Below the pieces are notes generated by a model. That model was not told where the DNA came from and did not search any database. It was given only the letters and a program-made list of their open reading frames with translations. Shown here one piece after another: positions 14,401 through 56,711 of a DNA stretch of 64,000 nt. The position numbers and the translations under genes were made by a program. Location of the stretch: positions 1,929,583-1,993,582 of the forward strand of contig NC_068983.1 of NCBI RefSeq assembly GCF_001194135.2. The letters run 5' to 3'. The stretch is from Octopus bimaculoides. Its lineage: Eukaryota. The stretch's first letter is position 1; the number at the start of each line of letters is the position of its first letter.

Positions 14401-16160
14401 TCTCGGAACTTTCCAGGAAGTAATTTTTCCACCTCTTCGGACCTTTCCAGGAAGTAATTCCTCAACTTCCTCCCCTTTCTTGGATCTTTCCAGGGAGTAA
14501 ATCCTCCCCTTCTTCATCACCTTGGAACTTTCCAGGAAGTAATTCCCCTTCCTCGAAATGATCCGGGAAGTAATTCCTCCCCGTCTTCGGACCTTTCCCA
14601 GGAAATAATTCCTCAACTTGCTCCCCTTCCCTGGGAATTTCCAGGAAGTAACACCTCCCCTTCCTCACTCTCCTTGGAACTTTCCAGGAAGCTCCATCGT
14701 CAGATTTTTGCAGGAAGTACATCAACGTAGAATTTTGCAGGAACTTGCCAGGATGACATTTTCAGGAATTACTAACCTCGGAACTTTCCAGGAAATAGTC
14801 AATCCGGATATTTCTAGTAAGTCCCATCCCTGGAACTTTCCTGGAAGTAGTTAATCCTTGGAGCTTTCCCGAAAGACATTTGAACTTTGCAGGAAATCCA
14901 CGAAGCTCCATCGTCGGAGTTTTGCAGGAAATAGTCCATCCTCGGAAATTTCCAGGAAGTCCCATCCCCGGAACATTCCAGGAAGTATTTAATCCTCCAA
15001 ACTTTCCAAGAAGTCGCATCCTTGCAACTTCTCAGAAAGTAGCTCTTCCTCGGAACTTTCCAGGGAGTTGCCCATCCTCGAAACTTTCCAGGGAAAGCCG
15101 TGGAAATTTCCAGGAAGCTCTATCGTCAGATGTTTGCAGGTAGCAGATCAACCTTGGAACTTTCCAGAAAATAGAACTTTGCAGGATCTTTCCAGGATGA
15201 CATCAGATATTTTCAGGAATTACCATCCTTGGAACTTTCCAGAAAGTCACATCCCCGGAACGTTCCAGGAAGTAGTTATTCCTCGGAACTTTCCAAGAAA
15301 TACCATCCTTGGAACTCTCCAGGAAGTAGCCCATCCTCGGAAATTTCCAAGATATCCCATCCTCGTAACTTTCCAGGGAGTAGATCAACCTAGGAACTTT
15401 CCAGGAAGTTGCTCATACACGGAATATTTCAAGACGTTTCCCATCCTTGGAACTTTCCAGGAAATTCGTGGAGCTTTCCAGCAAGTAGAACTTTGCAGGA
15501 ACTTTCCAGGACGACATCAAATATTTCAGGAACATTCCGGGAAGCTGCTAATCCTGGGAACTTCCGGGATGACATCGGGACTTTGCAAGAATTACCATTC
15601 TCGGAACAATCCAGGAACTAGCTCATCCTCGGAACTTTCCAGTAAGTTGCCGATCCTCTGATCTTTGCACGAAAGCCGCAGAACTTTCCAGGAAGCTCCA
15701 TCGTTGGATTTTTGCAGGAAGAAGTTCATCCTCAGAACTTTGCAGGAACTTTCCAGGACAATAGATGTTTTAAGGAATTGCCATCCTCGGACCTTTCCAG
15801 GAAATAGTCCATCCTCGGAAATTTCCAGGAAGTAATTCCTCTCCTTCCTTGGAACATTCCACGACGTAATTCCCCCCACGGAATTTTCCGTGATGTATTT
15901 CCACTTCATCGGAACTTTCCATGAGTTATTCCTCCTCTTCCTTAAAAGTTTCCAAGAAGTAATTCACCCCCTCGGAACATTCGAGGAATTAATTCCTCCC
16001 CTTATGAACTTTCCAGTATGAAAATCCCCTCCTTCCTTTCCTCAGAATATTCCATGCGGTAATCGCTCCCCTTCTTGGAACTCTCCAGGAAGTAATTCCT
16101 CCCTTACCCTTGACGTTTCCAGGAAGTAATTCCACCCCTTCGGAACTTTCCATAGCAGCC
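14398..16160. repeat. Minisatellite array, ~27-33 bp units with core CCTCGGAACTTTCCAGGAAG
   Basis: Core repeated throughout (roughly 50-60 units by eye). Outer blocks use a ...GTAATTCCTCCCCTT linker; the inner block uses ...ATAGTCCATC and GCTCCATCGTC variants. Confidence 0.95.
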
Positions 16161-19238: not shown

Positions 19239-19273
19239 ACATTATTCCTCATCTCTTNNNNNNNNNNNNNNNN

Positions 19274-29056: not shown

Positions 29057-30858
29057 CCAGCAGTATAGCACGGCGTTGCTCAGGATTAAGCTATGATTAT
29101 TAAGTGATCAAGCGCTTTATTTCAAAGCAAAATAAGTGACACCGACATCAAATTTGAGCGAAATCTGTTGAAATTGGTAAACGTTTGTCTGAAAATGGGT
29201 TGCAGCAATTTGATTGGGAAATTCCATGAGGAATCGGTTTATCGATTATTTCCACTCATCAAATGTTTTTTTTGTTTTTGAGAACTCAAAGATCGTATGA
29301 GTCCTAAGTAATGCTGGCATCAGGTTTGAGCAAAATATGTCAAAATTGGTAAAAGTTATCGTTGAAAATGGGGTGTAGCCAATTTTAGTGGGAAATCCTA
29401 TAACGAATTGGTTTATCAATTTTTTTTATCCTGACTGAATGGAAAACCCAAAATGGATGCATGCCACCGATAGTGTTTGGCCTTGGGATTTGTTGATGGA
29501 CATGGTGAAGCGTGGTCTCACCGAGAACTGCGATCTGCGGAAGTTAAACGGCATGTCTGACCCCGAGGGATAAAGCTGCATCCTTGAAACGAAAACATGT
29601 TCACCCGTTCCCGCACCCTGTAACAATGGTGGCCTGAATCAAGTGGGGCGTCAAGGACTTGGTTACTAAGCGGGTCCCGTTGCACTGATTAAGCGTGAGC
29701 AAGTTTCTGATTAGCATAACTGGGCATCCAACCCTTAGCTAAGAGTGTGAGGTGGAAGCGCTGCTGGCTCCAATGAGTTGAGATAATCGATAGGGTAATT
29801 GACAATGTCTTGTGGGTGAGATGTCCGGTCAATCGATTTGTAAATGCGCTCCTCACCTGGAATTAGGCTTATGAACCAGTCATTGATAGCATTGACAGCT
29901 ACGTTTTGTGGGGTCAGGATGGTTCTTTCACTGAGCCAATTGGTGTCTGCATAGTTATTTTCCAGATTGGGGAACATTGTTTCCAAAGGATCGGAAGGAT
30001 TGTCCACAGTGTTGCACAGTTCAGAGATGGATATGCCGCCCCTATCATTCCTAGGGACCTTGCCTTCTCCAAGGGCTAAAATGCTTTCATCAAATGCTGC
30101 AGACATGCTATCACCAAGCAAGTGCGCATGTTTGTTTGTGCTTAGGCTTAAAGTCTTAACCTGGGGCCATAAAGTGGATGAGTTAACGCATGCGCACACC
30201 TCATCAGCCCGGCTCCCTTTAGGGATGACAGGAAGGGTTTGCCGGAAATCTCCTGAAAGCAATAGTTATACCACCCATAGAAGCTGTAGAATCCTTGATT
30301 CCTTTCAGTGATCGGTCTAGTGCCTCAAGGGCACCCTTATTGGTCATTGTGCATTCGTCCCATACAATGAGACGGCACTGTCTAAGAACTTGAACTTGAA
30401 CTTGCTCTGAATTTTTACCAATGTTGGAAGTAGCCCTCACCAAATCTAAAGGCAGCTTGAATGCCGAATGCGCCGTCCTACCTCCCGGCAACAACGTAAT
30501 AGCAATTCCTGAGGAAGCAACGGCTGGCACAATTTGTTTCTCGCGACGAATCTTACTAAGTATTAATTGTGTTACAAAGGATTTGCTCGTACCTCCAGGA
30601 GCATCGAGGAAAAAAAATGCCGGCCGCCTGTTTTTCAATGGCACTGACGACAGATTCATACAGCAGCCTCTGATCAGGGGTCAATTTCGGTTCATTTACC
30701 CTCAGGTACTCCGCAAGGCTATCAGCGTCATATGACAACTCCAGAAGTAACTTTGGTGGGAGTGTGTTAACGACCTGTCGCAATGAGGATGGCAAACCGA
30801 ATGTGTTCAACGCTGCCCCACCCATTTTGAGCTGGACATCCTCGATTTCAATCAGCAC
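29057..30858 (-). mobile_element. Helitron remnant: 3' terminus plus Pif1 helicase region (5' end not found)
   Basis: Minus-strand 3' end AGCAACGCCGTGCTATACTGCTGG|T at 29057 (hairpin plus CTRR); a tandem ~180 bp subterminal repeat at ~29130-29430; helicase ORF pieces at 29426-30858. Confidence 0.85.
29426..30858 (-). pseudogene. Helitron RepHel helicase (Pif1 family), frameshifted
   Basis: FFLDAPGGTSKSF (Walker A, G to S), AVASSGIA.TLLPGGRTAHSAFKLPL, IVWDECTM (Walker B), LSGDFRQTLPVIP, FRRSQF...MSINKSQGQTL, spread over four frames. Confidence 0.95.
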
Positions 30859-38756: not shown

Positions 38757-39958
38757 GTATGTATATATATATATNNNNNNNNNNNNNNNNNNNNNNNNNN
38801 NNNNNNNNNNNNNNNNNNNNNNNNNNNNNNNNNNNNNNNNNNNNNNNNNNNNNNNNNNNNNNNNNNNNNNNNNNNNNNNNNNNNNNNNNNNNNNNNNNNN
38901 NNNNNNNNNNNNNNNNNNNNNNNNNNNNNNNNNNNNNNNNNNNNNNNNNNNNNNNNNNNNNNNNNNNNNNNNNNNNNNNNNNNNNNNNNNNNNNTATATA
39001 TATATATATATGTCGTTGAAAGCTCGAAATAGGGAGTAATTAGCAGCCGACAATTGCGAAGGTGGTTAGACTTCTGTCGCTATTTTGTCCCGTTACTTCT
39101 CTTTAATTATGTGTTTATGTATTGTTCATTCGTTGGTGATGTCCTGAATTTTACGTATTATGTGTATATATATATATATATGCACATGGGATGGGCTTTT
39201 GTTTTAGTTTCCACTCACAAGGCTTTGGTCGGCCGATTGCTGTGGTAGAAGACACTTGCCAAACGTTCCACGCAGACAGACTGAACCCGGAACCATGTGG
39301 TTGGGAAGCAAACTACTTACCACACAGTCACGCCTGCGCCTATACATCAAAACGCAATGAAAATTTTATTCAAAATAGTCTTTACTTGCTTTAGTGTTTC
39401 TTTAGATATATGGTACTGAAACAATGAATAAAAGATGAATCTATCACGAGTTCTACGTATCTGAGTCTCTAACGTTTCTTAACACACATTCACATCACGA
39501 GTGTTGATTATATTCTGATATGTATATAAAATCAGTTTGTAAATAATTTAAAATATATAATCATTATAACGTTTCTTTCGTGATACCCTATTTCAAACTT
39601 TTGATAAATTACGAAAGTGAAACTCAGTGTTACGGTACAAGAATTCTCCGCAATAAATAATGAAAATTATTCATAAACAAATCAGTATGTAATTATTTGT
39701 CGATGACTGATTGATTCTGAAGAAATATTAGAAACAATGGCCCTCATTCATTTAGTCATATTTCTAATAAAACATGATCTACAATTTATGAGTATGTGCA
39801 TGCGGGTGTATATGTATGTATATATATAAATATGTACATGCATATGCACATATCTTTGAATAGATATACAAAGATATGTCTGCGTGTGCTTATGTCTGTG
39901 TGCGTACGTGTGTGGTTGCGTGTATGAGTGCGCGTATGTATGTGTGTGTGTGTGAGAG

Positions 39959-39989
<31 letters not shown>

Positions 39990-40399
39990 GAGACAGACAG
40001 ACAAATAGACAGAGGGTATGTGTGTATAACTATAAATTCATANNNNNNNNNNNNNNNNNNNNNNNNNNNNNNNNNNNNNNNNNNNNNNNNNNNNNNNNNN
40101 NNNNNNNNNNNNNNNNNNNNNNNNNNNNNNNNNNNNNNNNNNNNNNNNNNNATGAGTGCGCGTATGTATGTGTGTGTGTGTGAGAGAGAGAGAGAAAGAG
40201 AGACAGACAGAGACAGACAGACAGACAAATAGACAGAGGGTATGTGTGTATAACTATAAATTCATATATAGATAGAAACTCGAATATTCTATATTCTGAA
40301 TTTGACATTTGCACATATAGTAACGGAATCACGATATCGCATCAAAAGAAACTTTAAAAAAAAAATCAAAACATATCGAGTAGATTTTGGCTGGGAGAT

Positions 40400-46730: not shown

Positions 46731-48113
46731 AGAATATATGTATGTATTTGTATGTGGATATGCATATATATATATATATGTGTGTGTGTGTGTTTATATG
46801 TATACATATATGCGTATCTAACTGCAGATGTATATATGCATATATATGTATTATATACATGCACAACATATATATGTGTTCTGTGTGTATTTAATGGGAG
46901 CGAAAAGAGAGGGAACTGTAAATCTGACTAGAGAGAGAGAGACGTGTAATCAGTGTATCCGAATTTATTTATGTTTAACAGCTTTGTACAACTTCGCTCT
47001 GGGGAAAACTAATTTGCCATATACTCCAGCTCCTTGAAAACAGTGTCCAAACTTGGAATTACCGATATTTCTTATTAATTGATTTTAGTCAATGATCATT
47101 CGATCCAGCTTTACAATGAAAGGAAAACAGCTTAAGGCCACATAAAAAAGGCTTCACATATTACACCTGGCTCAGCCAAAGTTCATTATGGCGTTCTTTG
47201 GATAAACAATTTATATATATTATGAATAGAAAGTCACTGCAGAACTAGATACGTGTATGTGTGCTTGTGTCTGTTCACACACACACACACACACACACAT
47301 ATATTATACATACATATACACATTTTTAACTCATACACGCAGACGCAATCACTCCGAAAACGCAGATGCATACACGTTCAATTTACATATGTATATACGC
47401 TGGCGCTAGTATAGTCGTTTGCTTTCATTTGTTTATCATATTTAAAGATTTTCACCGTTCTATTAAATTATGGCACTTTTAACAAATGAACTATGCCGCA
47501 GCGTCTACATCTCTGCTTCAGAACAGAACATCGTGAAGAAGTTTAATAAGCTGGCTTCCAAACACTACAAAGGTCATCAGCCCTTGTGAGAAAATGAGTT
47601 TCTTTACAAATATGTTCACATGCAATGGGAAGAGTAATGACAGAAAGGATTAAAAAAAAAATAATTTGTAATGGAATTTCAATCAATTGACCGTATCAAT
47701 TTGAAAAGAAACCTCTCTTTCTCTGTATTCCCTTTTATCTATCTCGCTCTATTTATCTATATTATATTATATTATATTATATATATATATATATATATNN
47801 NNNNNNNNNNNNNNNNNNNNNNNNNNNNNNNNNNNNNNNNNNNNNNNNNNNNNNNNNNNNNNNNNNNNNNNNNNNNNNNNNNNNNNNNNNNNNNNNNNNN
47901 NNNNNNNNNNNNNNNNNNNNNNNNNNNNNNNNNNNNNNNNNNNNNNNNNNNNNNNNNNNNNNNNNNNNNNNNNNNNNNNNNNNNNNNNNNNNNNNNNNNN
48001 NNNNNNNNNNNNNNNNNNNNNNNNNNNNNNNNNNNNNNNNNNNNNNNNNNNNNNNNNNNNNNNNNNNNNNNNNNNNNNNNNNNNNNNNNNNNNNNNNNNN
48101 NNNNNNNNNNNNN

Positions 48114-48779: not shown

Positions 48780-51709
48780 ACATGTATCTATCAATTATAT
48801 ATATTTACAATATTGCATGTTTTGATATTTGGAATATAGCAATGGTGGTCATCCTCATTAAAGTGATTGAGTGTTCAGATCGACCGAAATATTGACTTTA
48901 ATCCGTTACGAAATTTTTCACTCTTTCTTTGTCGAAGCGTTACTTCACGAGATTTGGAATGAAAGTTGGGTGAACTGGAACTTAGAGGTCGGAAAGCGAG
49001 ATTCTTAGTCGAACATTCATAACTATCTATTGATACAAATTTGATAGACATAAAATAAGATTGATTGTTAGCATGTATCGTTCAAGTGTTGTGAAATGTT
49101 GGAGATGGAAGCAACGTGACACTTGTTTTATTTAAATTAATTCATGCTAGGAATCTTATCTAAATTTCCAAATATTAACAAGATTTTCAAGAAATAATCA
49201 ACTTTTGGTAAAGGAGGAAGTTAAAGTTTCATCTGGCAAAAAGCAAGTCGGCGTATGACAATCTGTGAAACCCCTCCAGCACTCATTAAATATCTCTTAA
49301 CACATGTTTGTATTTAACGTTGTCCACTCAATTTAAAGTATTCGGGTTGTTGTTGTTGTCTGATGGTAATTCATTACCACCACCACCCTAACCCTATCAC
49401 CGTCTAGGGCAATTACCTCACTAGTCTATTTTAGCGATTAGAGTAAACAATTAGACGTAGGTGTATTTCACGGAAAGAATAGGATTTAACGGTTCTTATG
49501 TTTACCAAGATGTGCGCGCTATTAGACCGATGACGTAAACCATGCTCCATACGTCACCACGGCCCTGATACCTAAATATACTCAGAAAAACAACGAATCA
49601 TCATTGTATTTCTAACCACTATACAAACGTAACAAATATATGACTACGTATTCTATCTTTTTTTTTTATTTGCTGAAACGGAAATAATAAACAGCATAAC
49701 ATGATAAGATATGTTTATGTGGTTTTACTTCCTGTGAAGTATCAACGTGGATGTAATTATGCACGCTAAAGTGAAGGCAATGGCATTATTTAATGTGTGT
49801 GTGGGTTAGATGTATGTGTGAGTGTGTGCGTGTGTGAACTTTCATGATATAAAATAGATGCGAATAGCAATTTTGTTTCCAATTGTATTTTTGTTTTTGC
49901 ATATGATTTGTTTAATTTTAGTTTAAGGCAATAAATATTTTTCTTTCAGCAATTAGTATTCGTTTCATCATTTTCTATAAGCACCAAGAAATTTAAGAAA
50001 GGCTAAATCATAATTAATAATAAATCTCTGAACGAGGTATAAACAGTAGCTGCACGACAAGCTACAGTAGCATCCACCCTTAGTGGTTAGCCACACTTAA
50101 GTGGCAAATATACTTCACGTTAAATTATAATTATTGTACGTATGCCATATTTCCTGATAGTATCCATATTTCCTGATAATATCCATATTACAAATGTGTG
50201 TTTCTAAAGTTCCGTGTCATATGGCGAGTAATACACTAGTTTATATGGGTATATATAATTACATTACTATTGTCCTATCGCTTCATTACACAATGAAATC
50301 ATAATGCATTTGTGTTCGTTTGAGTTTCTGTCAAGCTTCAATACAAGCTTCAAAAGCTGGTAAGGTTATAGCGAGCTCTGACTGTAGAACTTTAACTCAG
50401 CCTCTGTACTGGCTTCATACAACACCATAAAGGCTTTCAATGGATTTTGTGTTTTACGGAAAATAAAAAAAATTGCCTCTGCTTTCAGTTTATAATTAAT
50501 TATTTTTTCAGTTTTTTTTGTGATTTGCAATATTTGTTGTCATAATTATAACACATACACACATACATACATGCTGATATGAATATATATGTATACATAT
50601 ATACATTTATGCGTGTAATGCATGTACACACACATATGCGTATATATATAAATGTATATACATATATACATGCATATATTGTGTGTGGAGTGTTAGGTGT
50701 GGTGTACTGAAATTCAATATTGAGAAGAAAAATCGTCAGAATTTTTGAAAAATCTATCTGTCAGTCTGACTACCTATTTATCTATCTAACTATCTGCCGA
50801 CCTATGTTTCTATCTATCTGTCTCTATTGTCATGGAACCTCACCCCCACCAAAACAAAATGTGTTCTCTTCTTCTAAACAAAACCCCCAAACCAAAAGAC
50901 ATGTTTTCTATAAAAGAACAAGCTGTTTGTACATTCACAAAATTTTATTTGACAAGTTCGAGAAAGAACGAACGCGTTAATAATAATGAAGAAATAAAAA
51001 AGATTTTTTTTCCTAAATTCTGACGGCCTCTCTCTCTCNNNNNNNNNNNNNNNNNNNNNNNNNNNNNNNNNNNNNNNNNNNNNNNNNNNNNNNNNNNNNN
51101 NNNNNNNNNNNNNNNNNNNNNNNNNNNNNNNNNNNNNNNNNNNNNNNNNNNNNNNNNNNNNNNNNNNNNNNNNNNNNNNNNNNNNNNNNNNNNNNNNNNN
51201 NNNNNNNNNNNNNNNNNNNNNNNNNNNNNNNNNNNNNNNNNNNNNNNNNNNNNNNNNNNATATATATATATATATATATAGTAATATTTGGGGATGGTGA
51301 TTTCTTTTTGTGCTTGCCAAATAGACACACGCATTATATATTCGTTGTTCACTAGTTTATTACTTTTCTTTTGACATTAGGAATCTTGCGACACAGATTC
51401 ATAAGCATGTATATATACGTGTGTGTGTGTGTGTGTGTGATATCTTGGTCCTCTCCATCTCAAACTCTAACCTACAGTCTAGAAAAAGTATATATAAATA
51501 TGCTAATCCCGCCAATTTTCCAATCGCAACTTACCTGCATATCTTTTGTGCGTACAGTTGAAACTCGGAGTAGCGAGGGCCTGACTGATGTTATAGATGT
51601 AAATATAGATGCGTTATTGTTATAGACATATATTGTGATGGAGTTATATAACCATCATATGTTTATATATTATCACATTAATATATTTTCTTCGTTTGTT
51701 TAATTTCAG

Positions 51710-51778: not shown

Positions 51779-52198
51779 GTTAAGACAGTGCATCTCTCAA
51801 AAATGTGTTTACAACACCTATTATTCTTATAGAATGTCTAGCGCCGTGTAACTAATATAACACAACGATCGCAATAGAACTATCAAAATTCACTTCATAT
51901 TCCAACTTTTTCTTTTCCTCAAATAATTCACCATCATTGCTGAATTAATAATTTCATCCAATTTCAATATTAAAGATTGCTTGATACATTTGCGATATGG
52001 ATCATATTAGGACGTAATACACACACACACACAAATATATGTAGTGAGATTATATATATACATATGTATATATGCATGCATGCATGTGCAAAATATGTAC
52101 GCACTACATAATAATGCTTTAATTTCATAAAGATAACTTCACGGTAACTGTTGAGAATTTAAACATTGAAATCTGTTGGTAATTCATTGACAAGAAAG

Positions 52199-53515
52199 AT
52201 GCATATATTTGAAGTTTCCACAGAGTTTAACCTCAAAAACGGTTCCGGTTTCGATATGAATGAAAGCTCCTATGAAACTGATATTAAATCTCCTGCTTGG
52301 ACAGCAGACATAGTGGAAAGGATTATGTCCGTAGCTATCATCATGATTGCAACGATTGTTGGAAACCTAACTTTAATCGCAGCCATATTCTGGAAACGTT
52401 CTCGTCTTGTAAAAAGAGTAAATATATTTCTTGTGAACTTAGCTATTGGCGATTTGACAGTCGCAATGATTACAATGACCACAGAAATACTTTTTATTGC
52501 ATTCGGAGAATGGATATTAGGAGAAGTCGTCTGTAAGATCAGCGTCTATCTGCAAATTGTAACATTGGCAAGTACAACATTTCTGATGACTGGAATGAGT
52601 ATAGATCGATACCAGGTGATTGTCAAACCTCTGCAGTCCCTGAGAAAACGTCCAAAGATCCGAACGAAAGTTATTCTAGCCTGGGTGATGGCGTTTATAT
52701 TCGCACTTCCACAGCTCTTGATTTTTGTCCAAGTAAAGGAAACAAAATCTGATGGCAGCACGCAGATGAAATGTGTCAGTAAAGGTTATACAGACGAATG
52801 GCAACGCAAAGTGTACTTCACCTTTCTCACGGCATACATTTTGGTCGTACCAGGAGCAGTGATGTTTTATTGTTACTCGAATATAACACGTGTTGTGTGG
52901 AGCAGAGCAAACCATATACCACAAATAACCTATAACAACAAATCTATACAAACGACGAACCGCATTTCGATAAACCAGTCTCTTGTTTCGGCCTCCAAAC
53001 GGCGCGTAGTCACAATGACTTTGACTGTGATTATTGGTTTTCTAACATGTCTCACCCCATATTTCATAGTGAACCTCATTAGAATATACAGTAACTACAC
53101 CATAGGTATGAAGAAATCACTGCACGTTTCCGAAGCCATCTTTATGACACACAGTGCTCTCAACCCGATTCTTTATGGGATATTTTCATTACGAATGGAA
53201 CATTTCTACAGAGTAATTAACGTCTGCTTATGCTTTATACCAGTGAAGAGCGTCATAGAAAGGGACACAAGCGTGGACAGTCTAGGTCATATGAACACTT
53301 TAAGTATGTTACAGATTAGGTTTTCACGACTAGGAAACAGAAACGCTGTTCAAAGTATAAATCAAAAGAAACAATCGTTCCAGAGGAAAAGTTTTCTGCG
53401 AAAGAACGTCGGTCATGCAATTAAGACTACGTTTCATCCGAAATCAAATTCAGTTCAAACAACTTTAGACAATACAAACCTGCGTCCGGTGAGTGGGCTA
53501 TCGCCTAATGTTTAG
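52199..53515 (+). CDS. Class A neuropeptide GPCR, vasopressin/oxytocin-GnRH-CCAP receptor superfamily; start codon uncertain (ATG 52199 or 52256, or an upstream exon)
   Basis: Seven hydrophobic segments with GN (TM1), NLAIGD (TM2), C-K...LQ and DRY (52604-52612), AW...LPQL (TM4), ECL2 Cys, VVP...CY (TM5), CLTPYF (TM6) and NPILY (TM7). N-terminal sequons NGS and NES. No stop over more than 1.3 kb. Confidence 0.95.
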   Translation: MHIFEVSTEFNLKNGSGFDMNESSYETDIKSPAWTADIVERIMSVAIIMIATIVGNLTLIAAIFWKRSRLVKRVNIFLVNLAIGDLTVAMITMTTEILFIAFGEWILGEVVCKISVYLQIVTLASTTFLMTGMSIDRYQVIVKPLQSLRKRPKIRTKVILAWVMAFIFALPQLLIFVQVKETKSDGSTQMKCVSKGYTDEWQRKVYFTFLTAYILVVPGAVMFYCYSNITRVVWSRANHIPQITYNNKSIQTTNRISINQSLVSASKRRVVTMTLTVIIGFLTCLTPYFIVNLIRIYSNYTIGMKKSLHVSEAIFMTHSALNPILYGIFSLRMEHFYRVINVCLCFIPVKSVIERDTSVDSLGHMNTLSMLQIRFSRLGNRNAVQSINQKKQSFQRKSFLRKNVGHAIKTTFHPKSNSVQTTLDNTNLRPVSGLSPNV

Positions 53516-54459
53516 ACCTGCTTCAAAATGGCAAAAACTAAAAAATGGAACCAAACAGATATATCCCTCACCTGTCTTCGTCTTTGGTTTTCTGTACATA
53601 CACGTACATACATATGTATATATATATATGTATATATTTATATGTTCATTTCTTAATCTTTCCTTACAACCTGGTCCTTTCTGATAAACCTTTTGGATTC
53701 ACAGAGGATACTAATTCCATAATTCAAATAAACTCTTACATAATATCTCATAATTGGAAAAAAAGTAATGTTATCTAAAAGCTTAGACAGGAGCATGTGA
53801 GTGCCCGAAAGAAAGAGAAAGTATAAAAATAGAGGGAGGGATGCTGGAGAGTGAGTATTGAGTACGAAAAAGATGAGAATGAATAATAAAGAGAGAGAGA
53901 AAGAGAGAGAGAGGAAATAAAAACATTTTTTAAAGAAATCAAGGAAAAGAGTGTCCTGCTAAGTGGACAAAACTGATCTGAAAATCTGAATTTTGTTGTC
54001 AAGGAATGAATAAATAATGAGCAATGACTAATTAATGTCATTAACTACTGAAGAAATAGCTAATAAATATAACACAAATTGTTCAGAATTTAGGCACAAT
54101 CTAACAGTCTTTAAATAAGGGATTAGCCTATAGCATCGACCCCAGTAACTCGTTGGTTCTATATTTTGCCGATGCTAGAGTCGTGGAAGGACAAGTTGAG
54201 TTCGGTGAGATTTGAACTCAGAACGTAAAGAGCCATCACTGTTGTGGCTCTGCATATGTCACTGACCGTTAACTGTAATATTAAGTAGGATAGAAAATAT
54301 AACTTATTTACATACTCGCATACACACACGTATATATACTGATATACACGCATACACACACATATATATATATATACATACACGAACCTTGTTTTTATAT
54401 GCATAAATATATATATATGTGCGTGTGTGTGAGTGTAAAAGAATATGTATTTATGCTTG

Positions 54460-54492
<33 letters not shown>

Positions 54493-54677
54493 ATACATAC
54501 GCGTTAGTATATATATGATTAAGTATATACCTACATAAATATATATAAATAGAGCAATATACACATTCATACAGATATATGTAAGTTTATATAAAACACA
54601 CACACGCATTTTTATATACTAATACTTGTATATCTTTATACGTATGCATATGAGTATCTATCTATCTATCTATCTAT

Positions 54678-54718
<41 letters not shown>

Positions 54719-55732
54719 CACGTATATTTATTAAGCGAATTATTGGTCAGCCTACCACATACCAATGAGCACTCACTGAGTACGTCTATTCTTCTTCCAA
54801 CTGTGAAAAATGTCTCAAATTTTCCATTTCTTGCAACTCTTTGAATGAGCAATGCAGCAGTTATTAGCGTTTGTCAAGCTCTGTGACCCGATTAACCAAC
54901 GTCAGGCCACCAAAATTTCTCACATCCCTCACGTGATGGCAAAAAACGTGATCTAAAATACCCGTTGAGTTATTTTACCCACAATCTGTTTTCATTGACA
55001 CACATCTAAAGGAGTTTATGTCCCCAAAATTCCACACGACGGTCTCTTACGAGAGTATCATTCTTTCTTTGTTATATCTATTATTTGACGATACCGTTTC
55101 CTGTGACAACCCAGTCATGTCAGACAGGAGATTATCTTAATAAAATTACAGAATTATACGTTATTATCCGTCTCTCATTTTTTACATAGAACGATTGTAT
55201 TGAACGCGTTCGATGAAGCATGTTTCAACAGGGCTTTCTCAGTCTTGCATTCGCTGCATATAATCTGTAATATTATGATGAAAATACCCGTATGCAGCAA
55301 TCATTATTATTCAGACGATGCACTCTAAAATTTCTTATTAAAACCCCACAAGTTTCATCTGCATACAAACTAGTTTACCACGTGCATGGTTTATATCTGT
55401 AATATTTTGCTTCAGTGGAGGCATCACTACGTTACCTTAAACAATAAATATTATGGTTATTTAATATCGTCTAATTACAGTTGAAAATAAAATGCGTAAC
55501 ATGTCAACACTATACATCCGATTCTGTCGTTGTAACAGCATATATAAACATTCAAATCTTATATCTTTTTTAAGTCTACTTCAACCCTGTTGTATTGATA
55601 ATATTCCTTAAATCTCTTGAATGATGGAATAGGAGTTCAGAGTTCGGCACTGCTGCAGGCGTCATTGCACCCGTCAAACAACTTTAAAAAAAATGAAATG
55701 TAGTCAATTTGGAACTGCCAAAAAATGTCAAT

Positions 55733-55789
<57 letters not shown>

Positions 55790-56711
55790 TTTTATAAGCT
55801 TAAAGCAAGCCACCAACGTGCAATGACTAAAGAGAATAGCTGAATAGAGAGTATATATATAATATATATATATATGTATATATATAATATATTTATGCAT
55901 GTATGAAATATAAACTTTTTCAAGAAGAGAGTTTATGGTGACTTCGAAATTTAGGCCTGCTAGCCTTCATTGGACAAAAGCTAAGAGACCGAAGTTTCGA
56001 AGTCACTGCCACCACTTTTCTTGCAAAATCATCATACAAAGAAAAAGTACCAAGTAATTATTTAATTTAGCGTTAACTCGAATTGAAAAAAAGCATGTGT
56101 GCGTGCATGTCGTTTATATATATATATATATGCATGTGTGTGCTTGTGCGTGTGTGTGTGTGTGTATGGGTGCACGCACGTACGTATGTATGTATTATGT
56201 ATGTCGTTGTGTGCGTCTGTGTATTAATAACGCTCTCACAAGAGTTACGTAATTCCTTTGTATTTTAACTACTGCCTCACACAGATATTGTTTCCTGTCA
56301 ATGGGATTTCTAAAACTATTATAAAGTATTCCATACTCATCCCTACAAAGCCATCTGCTCAGTAGCCCCTCCATCCAATAACATTTTTCTCTCCCTCATG
56401 TGTTTCCCTCGGCCCACTCTCCATTGATCATTTGTAAATTATTTCACCCGACAGACAATGCACTAAATATTTTCATTCATCCGTATTTCTATTCCTACGT
56501 ATCGATAAAAAGAAATAAGATGAATATCAACCCAGTTCATGACAGAGAATCGTCAACATCACAACAACAATATTCTCCATATGCGTTATAGAGTGTGCAT
56601 ACAATATTAAGGAACCAAACTGAACCAAAGAATCACGCGTACCCATGGCCCACAAGTCGCTGGTGGTGAACAAACCCGCCATGAAAATAAAATGATAATT
56701 GTTTAAAAGTT

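Follow-up and report, generated by a model that had tools for sequence, protein, structure and literature searches.

The 64,000-nt stretch of Octopus bimaculoides DNA analysed here (the window) carries, at 52199-53515 on the plus strand, a single uninterrupted open reading frame (ORF) of 438 codons plus a stop, which encodes a rhodopsin-type G-protein-coupled receptor (GPCR). The encoded protein is a member of the achatin-receptor clade. This clade splits into two subfamilies, here called type A and type B. The window protein belongs to type B, as its cephalopod representative. Both this placement in family and subfamily and the functionality of the gene are regarded as nearly certain. The protein matched Pfam 7tm_1 with an E-value of 4e-49, and the longest other ORF free of N runs in the window has 197 aa. 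An in-frame stop codon lies 11 codons before the ATG, and an A occupies position -3. A TTG start at 52166 was also listed because the ORF tool uses the bacterial code; it was rejected as an artefact, and the same Met is the first residue of the Argonauta and Octopus sinensis orthologs. The locus was called as one 1317-nt range in assembly GCA_001194135.2 (chromosome CM046603.1, near 1.98 Mb), and the Argonauta hians ortholog was likewise called as one single range. The coding sequence is therefore intronless, as is usual in the achatin-receptor family.

The features of the receptor are given below, with TM for transmembrane helix, ECL2 for the second extracellular loop, C-tail for the C-terminal tail, pLDDT for the per-residue confidence of the structure model and dN/dS for the ratio of nonsynonymous to synonymous substitution. 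Residues were numbered with N1.50, D2.50, R3.50, W4.50 and the prolines 5.50, 6.50 and 7.50 as anchors, and the numbering was cross-checked against the HMMER alignment to GnRHR.

52199-53515, plus strand: complete coding sequence of the type-B achatin-family GPCR (gene call, dN/dS, conservation in Argonauta)
52238-52267, plus strand: extracellular N-terminus with the sequons N14-G-S and N21-E-S (read from the sequence; pLDDT below 50 for residues 1-29)
52304-52504, plus strand: TM1 (aa 36-65) and TM2 (aa 73-102), with N1.50 (N56) and D2.50 (D85); within it, the family-signature residues T2.57 and F2.67 of TM2
52523-52624, plus strand: TM3 (aa 109-142), with C112 (3.25), K113, Q119 (3.32) and DRY 136-138 (nt 52604-52612); C112 is the disulfide partner of C192, joining TM3 to ECL2, and V140 (3.53) and V142 (3.55) at the cytoplasmic end are type-B-specific sites
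52658-52720, plus strand: TM4 (aa 154-174), with W4.50 and LPQ (aa 170-172)
52727-52816, plus strand: ECL2 beta-hairpin and top of TM5, C192-x-S-x-G-Y-T-x-x-W-Q-R203-K204-x-Y
52772-52816, plus strand: the ECL2/TM5 stretch CVSKGYTDEWQRKVY (aa 192-206)
52796-52912, plus strand: TM5 (aa 200-238), with P5.50 and Y5.58
52976-53089, plus strand: TM6 (aa 260-297), with CLTPYF (aa 284-289, nt 53048-53065), Y6.51, F6.52, R295 (6.58) and the type-B-specific V270 (6.33) and V277 (6.40)
53051-53053, plus strand: L285 (6.48) of TM6, instead of the toggle-switch Trp, as aligned to CWTPY of GnRHR
53111-53188, plus strand: TM7 (aa 305-330), with E312 (7.39), F315 (7.42, nt 53141-53143) and S7.46
53147-53176, plus strand: THSALNPILY (aa 317-326), of which NPILY is nt 53162-53176
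53150-53152, plus strand: H318 (7.45) of TM7, diagnostic of type B
53195-53512, plus strand: helix 8 (aa 333-345, then Cys343/345) and long disordered C-tail

The class A microswitches D85, DRY 136-138, Y5.58, NPILY 322-326 and the C112/C192 pair were all present, and the sole exception was CWxP, which reads CLTP. A first-pass annotation of this DNA had singled out CLTPYF, THSALNPILY and the ECL2/TM5 stretch; all three were found, with CLTPYF exactly at the positions it gave, and the anchors it described as kept (C112-K113...Q119, LPQ and DRY) are indeed in place. An AlphaFold2 model, for which the input was a 105-sequence family alignment, showed a standard seven-transmembrane (7TM) bundle with an ECL2 beta-hairpin and a helix 8 (predicted TM-score, pTM, 0.72). 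The pLDDT of the core was mostly above 90 and both termini were disordered.

The homology search returned at its top a protein from the Logan sequencing-run assemblies with 97% identity, the Argonauta ortholog with 88%, and another likely cephalopod protein with 79%. Many mollusc, annelid and nemertean proteins of about 42-64% identity came next, mostly auto-named 'neuropeptide S receptor-like', and a second tier of about 37-48% identity included an Octopus vulgaris 'GnRH II receptor-like' protein. Saccoglossus g12245 was taken, as an assumption of ours, to be the deorphanized hemichordate receptor. For the placement, 38 labelled references were drawn from the GPCR set of Thiel et al. 2021 (PMC8557429), with labels from one supplement; they cover the achatin, vasopressin/oxytocin (VP/OT), neuropeptide S (NPS)/CCAP, GnRH/AKH/corazonin (Crz) and GPR150 receptors and outgroups. 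Lottia gigantea LOTGIDRAFT_94997 (Lottia 94997), Capitella teleta CAPTEDRAFT_24678 (Capitella 24678) and Platynereis dumerilii AKQ62997 (Bauknecht & Jekely 2015) are labelled there as the achatin-receptor clade. In BLASTP the window protein scored 375 bits with 64% identity to Lottia 94997 and 341 bits with 60% identity to Capitella 24678. Against the deorphanized Platynereis receptor it scored 266 bits, with 44% identity over the 7TM core, and the best non-achatin reference (NPS/CCAP, Lottia 126859) reached 158 bits and 29%.

A neighbour-joining (NJ) tree, which is distance-based, was built from 156 sequences and 355 columns with 300 bootstraps. The achatin clade including the window protein was recovered in 300/300 replicates, and so was type B. 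The sister clades VP/OT (300/300), CCAP/NPS (298/300) and GnRH/Crz (285/300) never included it, and a joint clade of achatin and CCAP/NPS receptors appeared in 28/300 replicates. Profile hidden Markov models (HMMs) trained without cephalopod sequences gave the window protein 558 bits for type B, 418 for type A and 165-176 for the three sister families, with NPS/CCAP at 176 and GnRH/Crz at 175. The nesting inside the VP/OT, GnRH or CCAP clade that would have contradicted the first-pass annotation was not seen, and the protein grouped with the deorphanized Platynereis receptor; the view that it is no cephalotocin/octopressin, GnRH or CCAP/NPS receptor was borne out. The annotation's further statement that achatin receptors adjoin the VP/OT-CCAP-GnRH assemblage agrees with the literature, where they form the 'b-unchar-3' clade beside the VP/OT, NPS/CCAP, GnRH and corazonin receptors (Mirabeau & Joly 2013).

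These scores and clades stand against the names in the databases, under which the protein would be an NPS/CCAP-type, a VP/OT-type (cephalotocin/octopressin) or a GnRH-type receptor. Such names have some ground: the Octopus sinensis and Argonauta orthologs are called 'neuropeptide S receptor-like' by NCBI, the best sequence matches among solved structures were GnRHR, CCK-A, OXTR and V2R, and the closest solved folds to the model were V1aR, the nearest, followed by the orexin, CCK, OXTR and GnRH receptors. But these solved matches are merely nearest relatives, because the Protein Data Bank holds no achatin receptor. The VP/OT receptors, with which the octopus cephalotocin and octopressin receptors belong, lie in the same beta-rhodopsin superclade; the human V1aR, OXTR and V2R show about 26% identity, and the V1aR fold had a TM-score of 0.88 on the target. 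They share C3.25, Q3.32, PQ in TM4, DRY and NPxxY with the window protein and differ from it in K3.29 (V in the window protein), the CWA.F...WG..AY motif of ECL2, W6.48 and N7.45; at the ECL2 motif the window protein reads C-V-S-K-G-Y...W-Q-R-K-V-Y. The GnRH-type W-Q-E at the top of TM5 is not matched either, since 5.35 is R. The NPS/CCAP receptors are the best-scoring non-achatin family, yet they form a separate clade and lack the S-x-G-Y and WQRK signature. We consider it extremely improbable that any of the database names is correct.

The family signature was derived here from 125 clade members (residues kept in at least 97% of them and in at most 15% of the sister-family references) and is not a published definition. 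It consists of T2.57, F2.67, S3.38, the S-x-G-Y of ECL2, R5.35, K5.36 and Y5.45, and the window protein carries it in full (T92, F102, S125, S194, G196, Y197, R203, K204 and Y213). All of these residues except S3.38 lie in the extracellular half. Across these 125 members the ECL2/TM5 motif shows no change at S, G, Y, W, Q or R and hardly any at K, and none of the VP/OT, CCAP/NPS and GnRH/Crz references carries it; the equivalent of 5.35 is E in 7/8 GnRH/Crz and W in 8/9 CCAP/NPS references. The ECL2/TM5 stretch is thus unlike the VP/OT motif, as had been noticed, while it marks the whole achatin family, both types included, and not this receptor in particular. The basic residues noted on the extracellular face (K113, R203/K204, R295 and K305/K306) are likewise present, but most of them are family-wide. 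K113 (3.26) is K or R across the whole superfamily, R203/K204 of the WQRK motif are invariant or nearly so in the clade, and the KK pair at 305-306, ahead of TM7, is conserved in cephalopods only.

Type A comprises the Platynereis receptor, Lottia 65275, the sea-slug 'achatin receptor 1' proteins, and the deuterostome and arthropod members. Type B groups the window protein with Lottia 94997, Capitella 24678 and others, about 70 proteins altogether; the named ones are all from molluscs, annelids or a nemertean, and type B is so far found only in lophotrochozoans. The term 'orphan' in the first-pass annotation holds in the functional sense, with respect to the ligand, and does not hold in the phylogenetic sense, given these orthologs. 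Lottia 94997 has CLTPYF and THSALNPILY identical to those of the octopus protein, and Capitella 24678 differs by S6.48 and A7.42. Both share H7.45, R6.58 and the ECL2/TM5 signature, and both are partial gene models. Chelicerates (spiders, a scorpion and horseshoe crabs) and decapod crustaceans were also seen to carry achatin-clade receptors of a type-A-like kind. They are auto-named CCAP, GnRH II, NPS or V1a receptor-like, and the family therefore sits in arthropods under wrong names.

The two types were separated by positions conserved within each, namely 1.53, 3.42, 3.53, 3.55, 4.42, 6.33 and 6.40, and also 7.45; of these, 3.53, 3.55 and 6.33 sit near the G-protein-facing end. Type B carries V3.53, V3.55, V6.33, V6.40, R6.58 and H7.45, and the window protein matches all of them. 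Q3.32, Y6.51, F6.52 and E7.39 are common to both types in addition to the signature. The Platynereis receptor shares K3.26, Q3.32, T2.57, F2.67, S-x-G-Y, WQRK, Y5.45, Y6.51, F6.52 and E7.39 with the window protein and differs at W6.48, A7.42, L7.43, N7.45, A3.53, C3.55, T6.33 and I6.40. Its tail carries NGFRLRVRF, which the window protein lacks. The C-tail motif NG[FY]RLRVRF of lophotrochozoan type-A receptors, including those of Platynereis and octopus, was found in 15/46 full-length proteins of the type-A group and in 0/65 full-length type-B proteins, the window protein included. An extended type-A form, [IV]I.E.N.NG[FY]RLRVRF, was also noted, for example in the O. vulgaris and O. sinensis type-A protein (P0096) at aa 431-452.

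A type-A gene was found in O. bimaculoides as well. It encodes XP_014770942.1 (P0199), is annotated 'GnRH II receptor', lies on another chromosome-scale contig and is intronless; type-A genes occur in O. vulgaris, O. sinensis and Argonauta as well. XP_014770942.1 matched the Platynereis receptor with 434 bits and 54% identity, and Lottia 65275 with 72% identity. Unlike the window protein, it reads CWTPYF and LLQSGLNP and has the type-A C-tail motif. The identity between the two octopus paralogs is 46%. The lower Platynereis score of the window protein (44% and 266 bits vs 54% and 434 bits), together with its type-B placement, indicates that the window gene is a paralog, not an ortholog, of the receptors with known ligands. 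The proposal that it would be 'the' receptor arm of D-peptide signalling in octopus therefore could not be upheld, since the second octopus gene is the true ortholog of the deorphanized receptor. The foremost candidate receptor for the octopus peptide Gly-D-Phe-Gly-Asp (G-dF-G-D) is type A. The bootstrap replicates disagreed on when the A/B duplication took place, and every arrangement had about 30% support or less. A retrogene origin of type B was considered and ruled out: the octopus type-A, Haliotis type-B and Lineus type-A genes are also intronless. The Lineus longissimus type-B gene spans 1759 nt for 494 aa, which implies an intron of about 270 nt.

The residues at the switch positions were then compared across the clade. 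Position 7.45 is H in 71/72 type-B proteins; type A has Q or N there, and every VP/OT, CCAP/NPS and GnRH/Crz reference has N. The first-pass annotation had asked whether H7.45 and L6.48 are diagnostic of a clade, and for H7.45 this was confirmed. Position 6.48 behaved differently: it is W in all type-A proteins and in all sister-family references but one (GnRH/Crz, with C). Among the type-B proteins, 40 have L and 20 have W at this site, and the remainder carry M, Q, H, E or S. All named molluscan type-B proteins (cephalopod, gastropod, bivalve and chiton) lack W6.48, and the nemertean Lineus and most sequences nearest Capitella, the annelid-like members, keep it. L6.48 thus marks the molluscan branch only. 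The pair at 6.48 and 7.42 is L-F in 37 and W-A in 17 type-B proteins; outside type B, 48/53 clade members have W-A. The change of W6.48 to L and of A7.42 to F was probably a single event at the base of Mollusca, and the counts of the L-F pair are therefore not independent. R6.58 (R295) is fixed in type B (72/72) and occurs in 17/39 lophotrochozoan and 7/7 chelicerate type-A proteins.

Positions 6.48, 7.42 and 7.45 pack together under the ligand pocket in class A structures, beside the sodium site. As the three are adjacent in this geometry, L6.48/F7.42 is read as compensated repacking and not as a loss of function. The aromatic bulk seems to have moved from TM6 to TM7, which looks like a compensated repacking of the toggle switch, with the contacts taken from general GPCR geometry.

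The selective constraint on the gene bears on the same point. Against Argonauta hians the identity was 88% at the amino-acid and 81% at the nucleotide level, and nucleotide similarity was detectable only across 52195-53481, which is essentially the ORF. The dN/dS (Nei-Gojobori) was 0.051 overall. It fell to 0.032 in the 7TM core and rose to 0.36 in the N-terminus, which evolves faster than any other part of the protein; synonymous sites were near saturation (dS about 1.4). The window gene is under strong purifying selection. The Logan contigs that encode the 97%-identical protein run colinear with the window and stop within a (GA)n repeat. Being either genomic or transcript assemblies, they do not serve as evidence of expression.

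A decaying or non-signalling receptor, that is a pseudogene, a decoy or a constitutive scaffold left after the loss of W6.48 and N7.45, would be in keeping with two of these observations: both residues are near-universal in the sister families and type A, and expression support was not obtained from the Logan contigs. The strong constraint, however, argues against a loss of function. The ORF is intact in O. bimaculoides, O. sinensis, Argonauta and a more distant cephalopod, H7.45 has persisted in three phyla and L6.48/F7.42 in every mollusc class sampled, and D2.50, DRY, Y5.58 and NPxxY are unchanged. Functional class A receptors without W6.48 exist, such as the glycoprotein-hormone receptors with M6.48, and H7.45 occurs in chemokine receptors. 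Decay or silence of the receptor is accordingly judged very unlikely.

We favour, with moderate confidence, the reading that the window gene encodes a functional second receptor of the achatin system, with a selectivity, activation threshold or coupling other than that of type A. Because the two types have the extracellular half in common, a ligand of the same chemical kind is most likely. It would be an acidic tetrapeptide of the achatin type (G-x-x-D), made from the achatin precursor of cephalopods, and the signal would pass through the intact D2.50/DRY/Y5.58/NPxxY machinery. Under the pocket it would meet an altered core, with H for N/Q at 7.45 and, in molluscs, L for W at 6.48 and F for A at 7.42. 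Three G-protein-facing residues, four conservative helix changes (1.53, 3.42, 4.42 and 6.40) and the C-tail would add to the differences from type A. As a consequence, the two octopus receptors are expected to differ in ligand selectivity, activation threshold or coupling.

The distribution of the peptide points in the same direction. Brachiopods and phoronids have neither an achatin precursor nor achatin-clade receptors (PMC8557429), and Lingula has 0 achatin-clade receptors among 40 beta-rhodopsin GPCRs, in a comparison whose reference set covered both subfamilies (PMC8557429). Where the peptide is absent, both receptor types are absent too, and this links type B to the achatin system. A transcript for achatin has been reported in the cuttlefish Sepia officinalis, and the oyster achatin precursors yield two acidic tetrapeptides, GFGD and GFWD. 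The known achatin receptors, those of Platynereis and Aplysia, respond only to the D-form, with a D-residue at position 2, and not to the all-L peptide (2023 paper).

On the other hand, type B could be of achatin-family origin by descent and now bind a different, possibly lophotrochozoan-specific neuropeptide. This neo-functionalised paralog would fit an old and well separated subfamily with only about 44-47% identity to type A and with R6.58 fixed, and no deorphanized type-B receptor was found in the literature searched. We hold it to be the less probable case, though one to be taken seriously, as the extracellular signature together with Q3.32, Y6.51 and E7.39 is invariant or nearly so across both types, and the phyla with type B are exactly those with achatin peptides, type B and type A both being missing where the peptide is.

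Several points weigh against a second achatin receptor. The changes at 6.48, 7.42, 7.43 and 7.45, on the pocket floor, could alter binding. Paralogs in this superfamily often differ in ligand, as the GnRH, AKH and corazonin receptors of the sister family do, which bind distinct peptides. No ligand test on any type-B receptor was found in the literature searched. XP_014770942.1 alone could account for all octopus achatin signalling. The octopus peptide Ocp-1 (Iwakoshi et al. 2000) is reportedly G-dF-G-D, as the first-pass annotation also states. A query with a nemertean precursor returned two weak matches to achatin precursors, neither from a cephalopod, in a kind of search that short repetitive precursors escape. 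The octopus type-A query matched sea-slug 'achatin receptor 1' proteins, all of type A, and no entry named from Aplysia, the source of the receptor apALNR. The tree is distance-based only, and it placed the branch point of type B as sister to the rest of the clade in 87/300 replicates and with the deuterostomes in 85/300. Because superfamily paralogs often switch ligand and the pocket floor is altered, we regard the chances that the ligand of the type-B receptor is of the achatin type as evenly balanced.

The second achatin receptor could, in a more specific form, divide the peptides with the first: type A would take the D-Phe2 form, and type B, through its remodelled pocket floor (H7.45, L6.48/F7.42), might take the all-L diastereomer or the second tetrapeptide of mollusc achatin precursors. 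This division is modelled on the Aplysia allatotropin-related peptide receptors ATRPR1 and ATRPR2, a paralog pair that divides the L- and D-diastereomers of one neuropeptide; they belong to the orexin/allatotropin family, so that the likeness is one of functional analogy only. We regard such a split as doubtful. A type-B receptor of Platynereis was sought among the orphans of the 2015 screen, and the two Platynereis orphans in the Thiel set were leucokinin-like and NPF-like.

The rest of the window was surveyed as well. Five N runs (assembly gaps) were recorded, at 19258-19273, 38775-38994, 40043-40151, 47799-48113 and 51039-51259. The last of them ends about 940 bp upstream of the receptor ATG, and the promoter and 5'-untranslated region are therefore incomplete in the assembly. 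Both flanks of the receptor gene (50100-50800 and 53600-55900) carry dense AT/TA-rich microsatellites and short tandem repeats, and the Logan contigs of a related octopus all break at a (GA)n tract near window position 53913. Two overlapping ORFs of 175 and 146 aa at 29735-30659 on the minus strand matched the PIF1-like helicase family PF05970 (E = 1e-13 and 8e-32). They cover consecutive parts of the profile and are a frameshifted helicase remnant, unrelated to the receptor and probably derived from a Helitron-type transposon. The 197-aa ORF, at 15068-15661 on the plus strand, has a reiterated pattern (...PWNFPE / PRNFPR / PRKFPR...) and no Pfam match, and it looks more like a translated degenerate tandem DNA repeat than a gene.

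The window receptor does not open a new class of system. Public databases already list the protein under a misleading automatic name, and its Lottia and Capitella orthologs are in the published achatin clade. The A/B split, H7.45 as its diagnostic residue, the pairing of W6.48L with A7.42F and the presence of both genes in cephalopods were not found described in the literature searched. These results correct two misleading octopus names, 'neuropeptide S receptor-like' and 'GnRH II receptor', and show that the achatin family has two conserved receptors, not one, in molluscs, annelids and nemerteans. Moreover, type B is a natural experiment in GPCR activation, in which the toggle Trp and the sodium-pocket Asn have been replaced in a gene that is strongly constrained. 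A concrete gene pair and a short list of peptides make a cephalopod deorphanization target. Three receptors for endogenous neuropeptides containing D-amino acids are counted so far, the achatin receptor, ATRPR1 and ATRPR2 (2023 paper). If the two octopus receptors do split the achatin peptides, the L-to-D isomerisation would act by selecting the receptor and not by turning the signal on or off, in what is the oldest D-peptide signalling system known, and the all-L diastereomer, long considered inactive, could gain a receptor.

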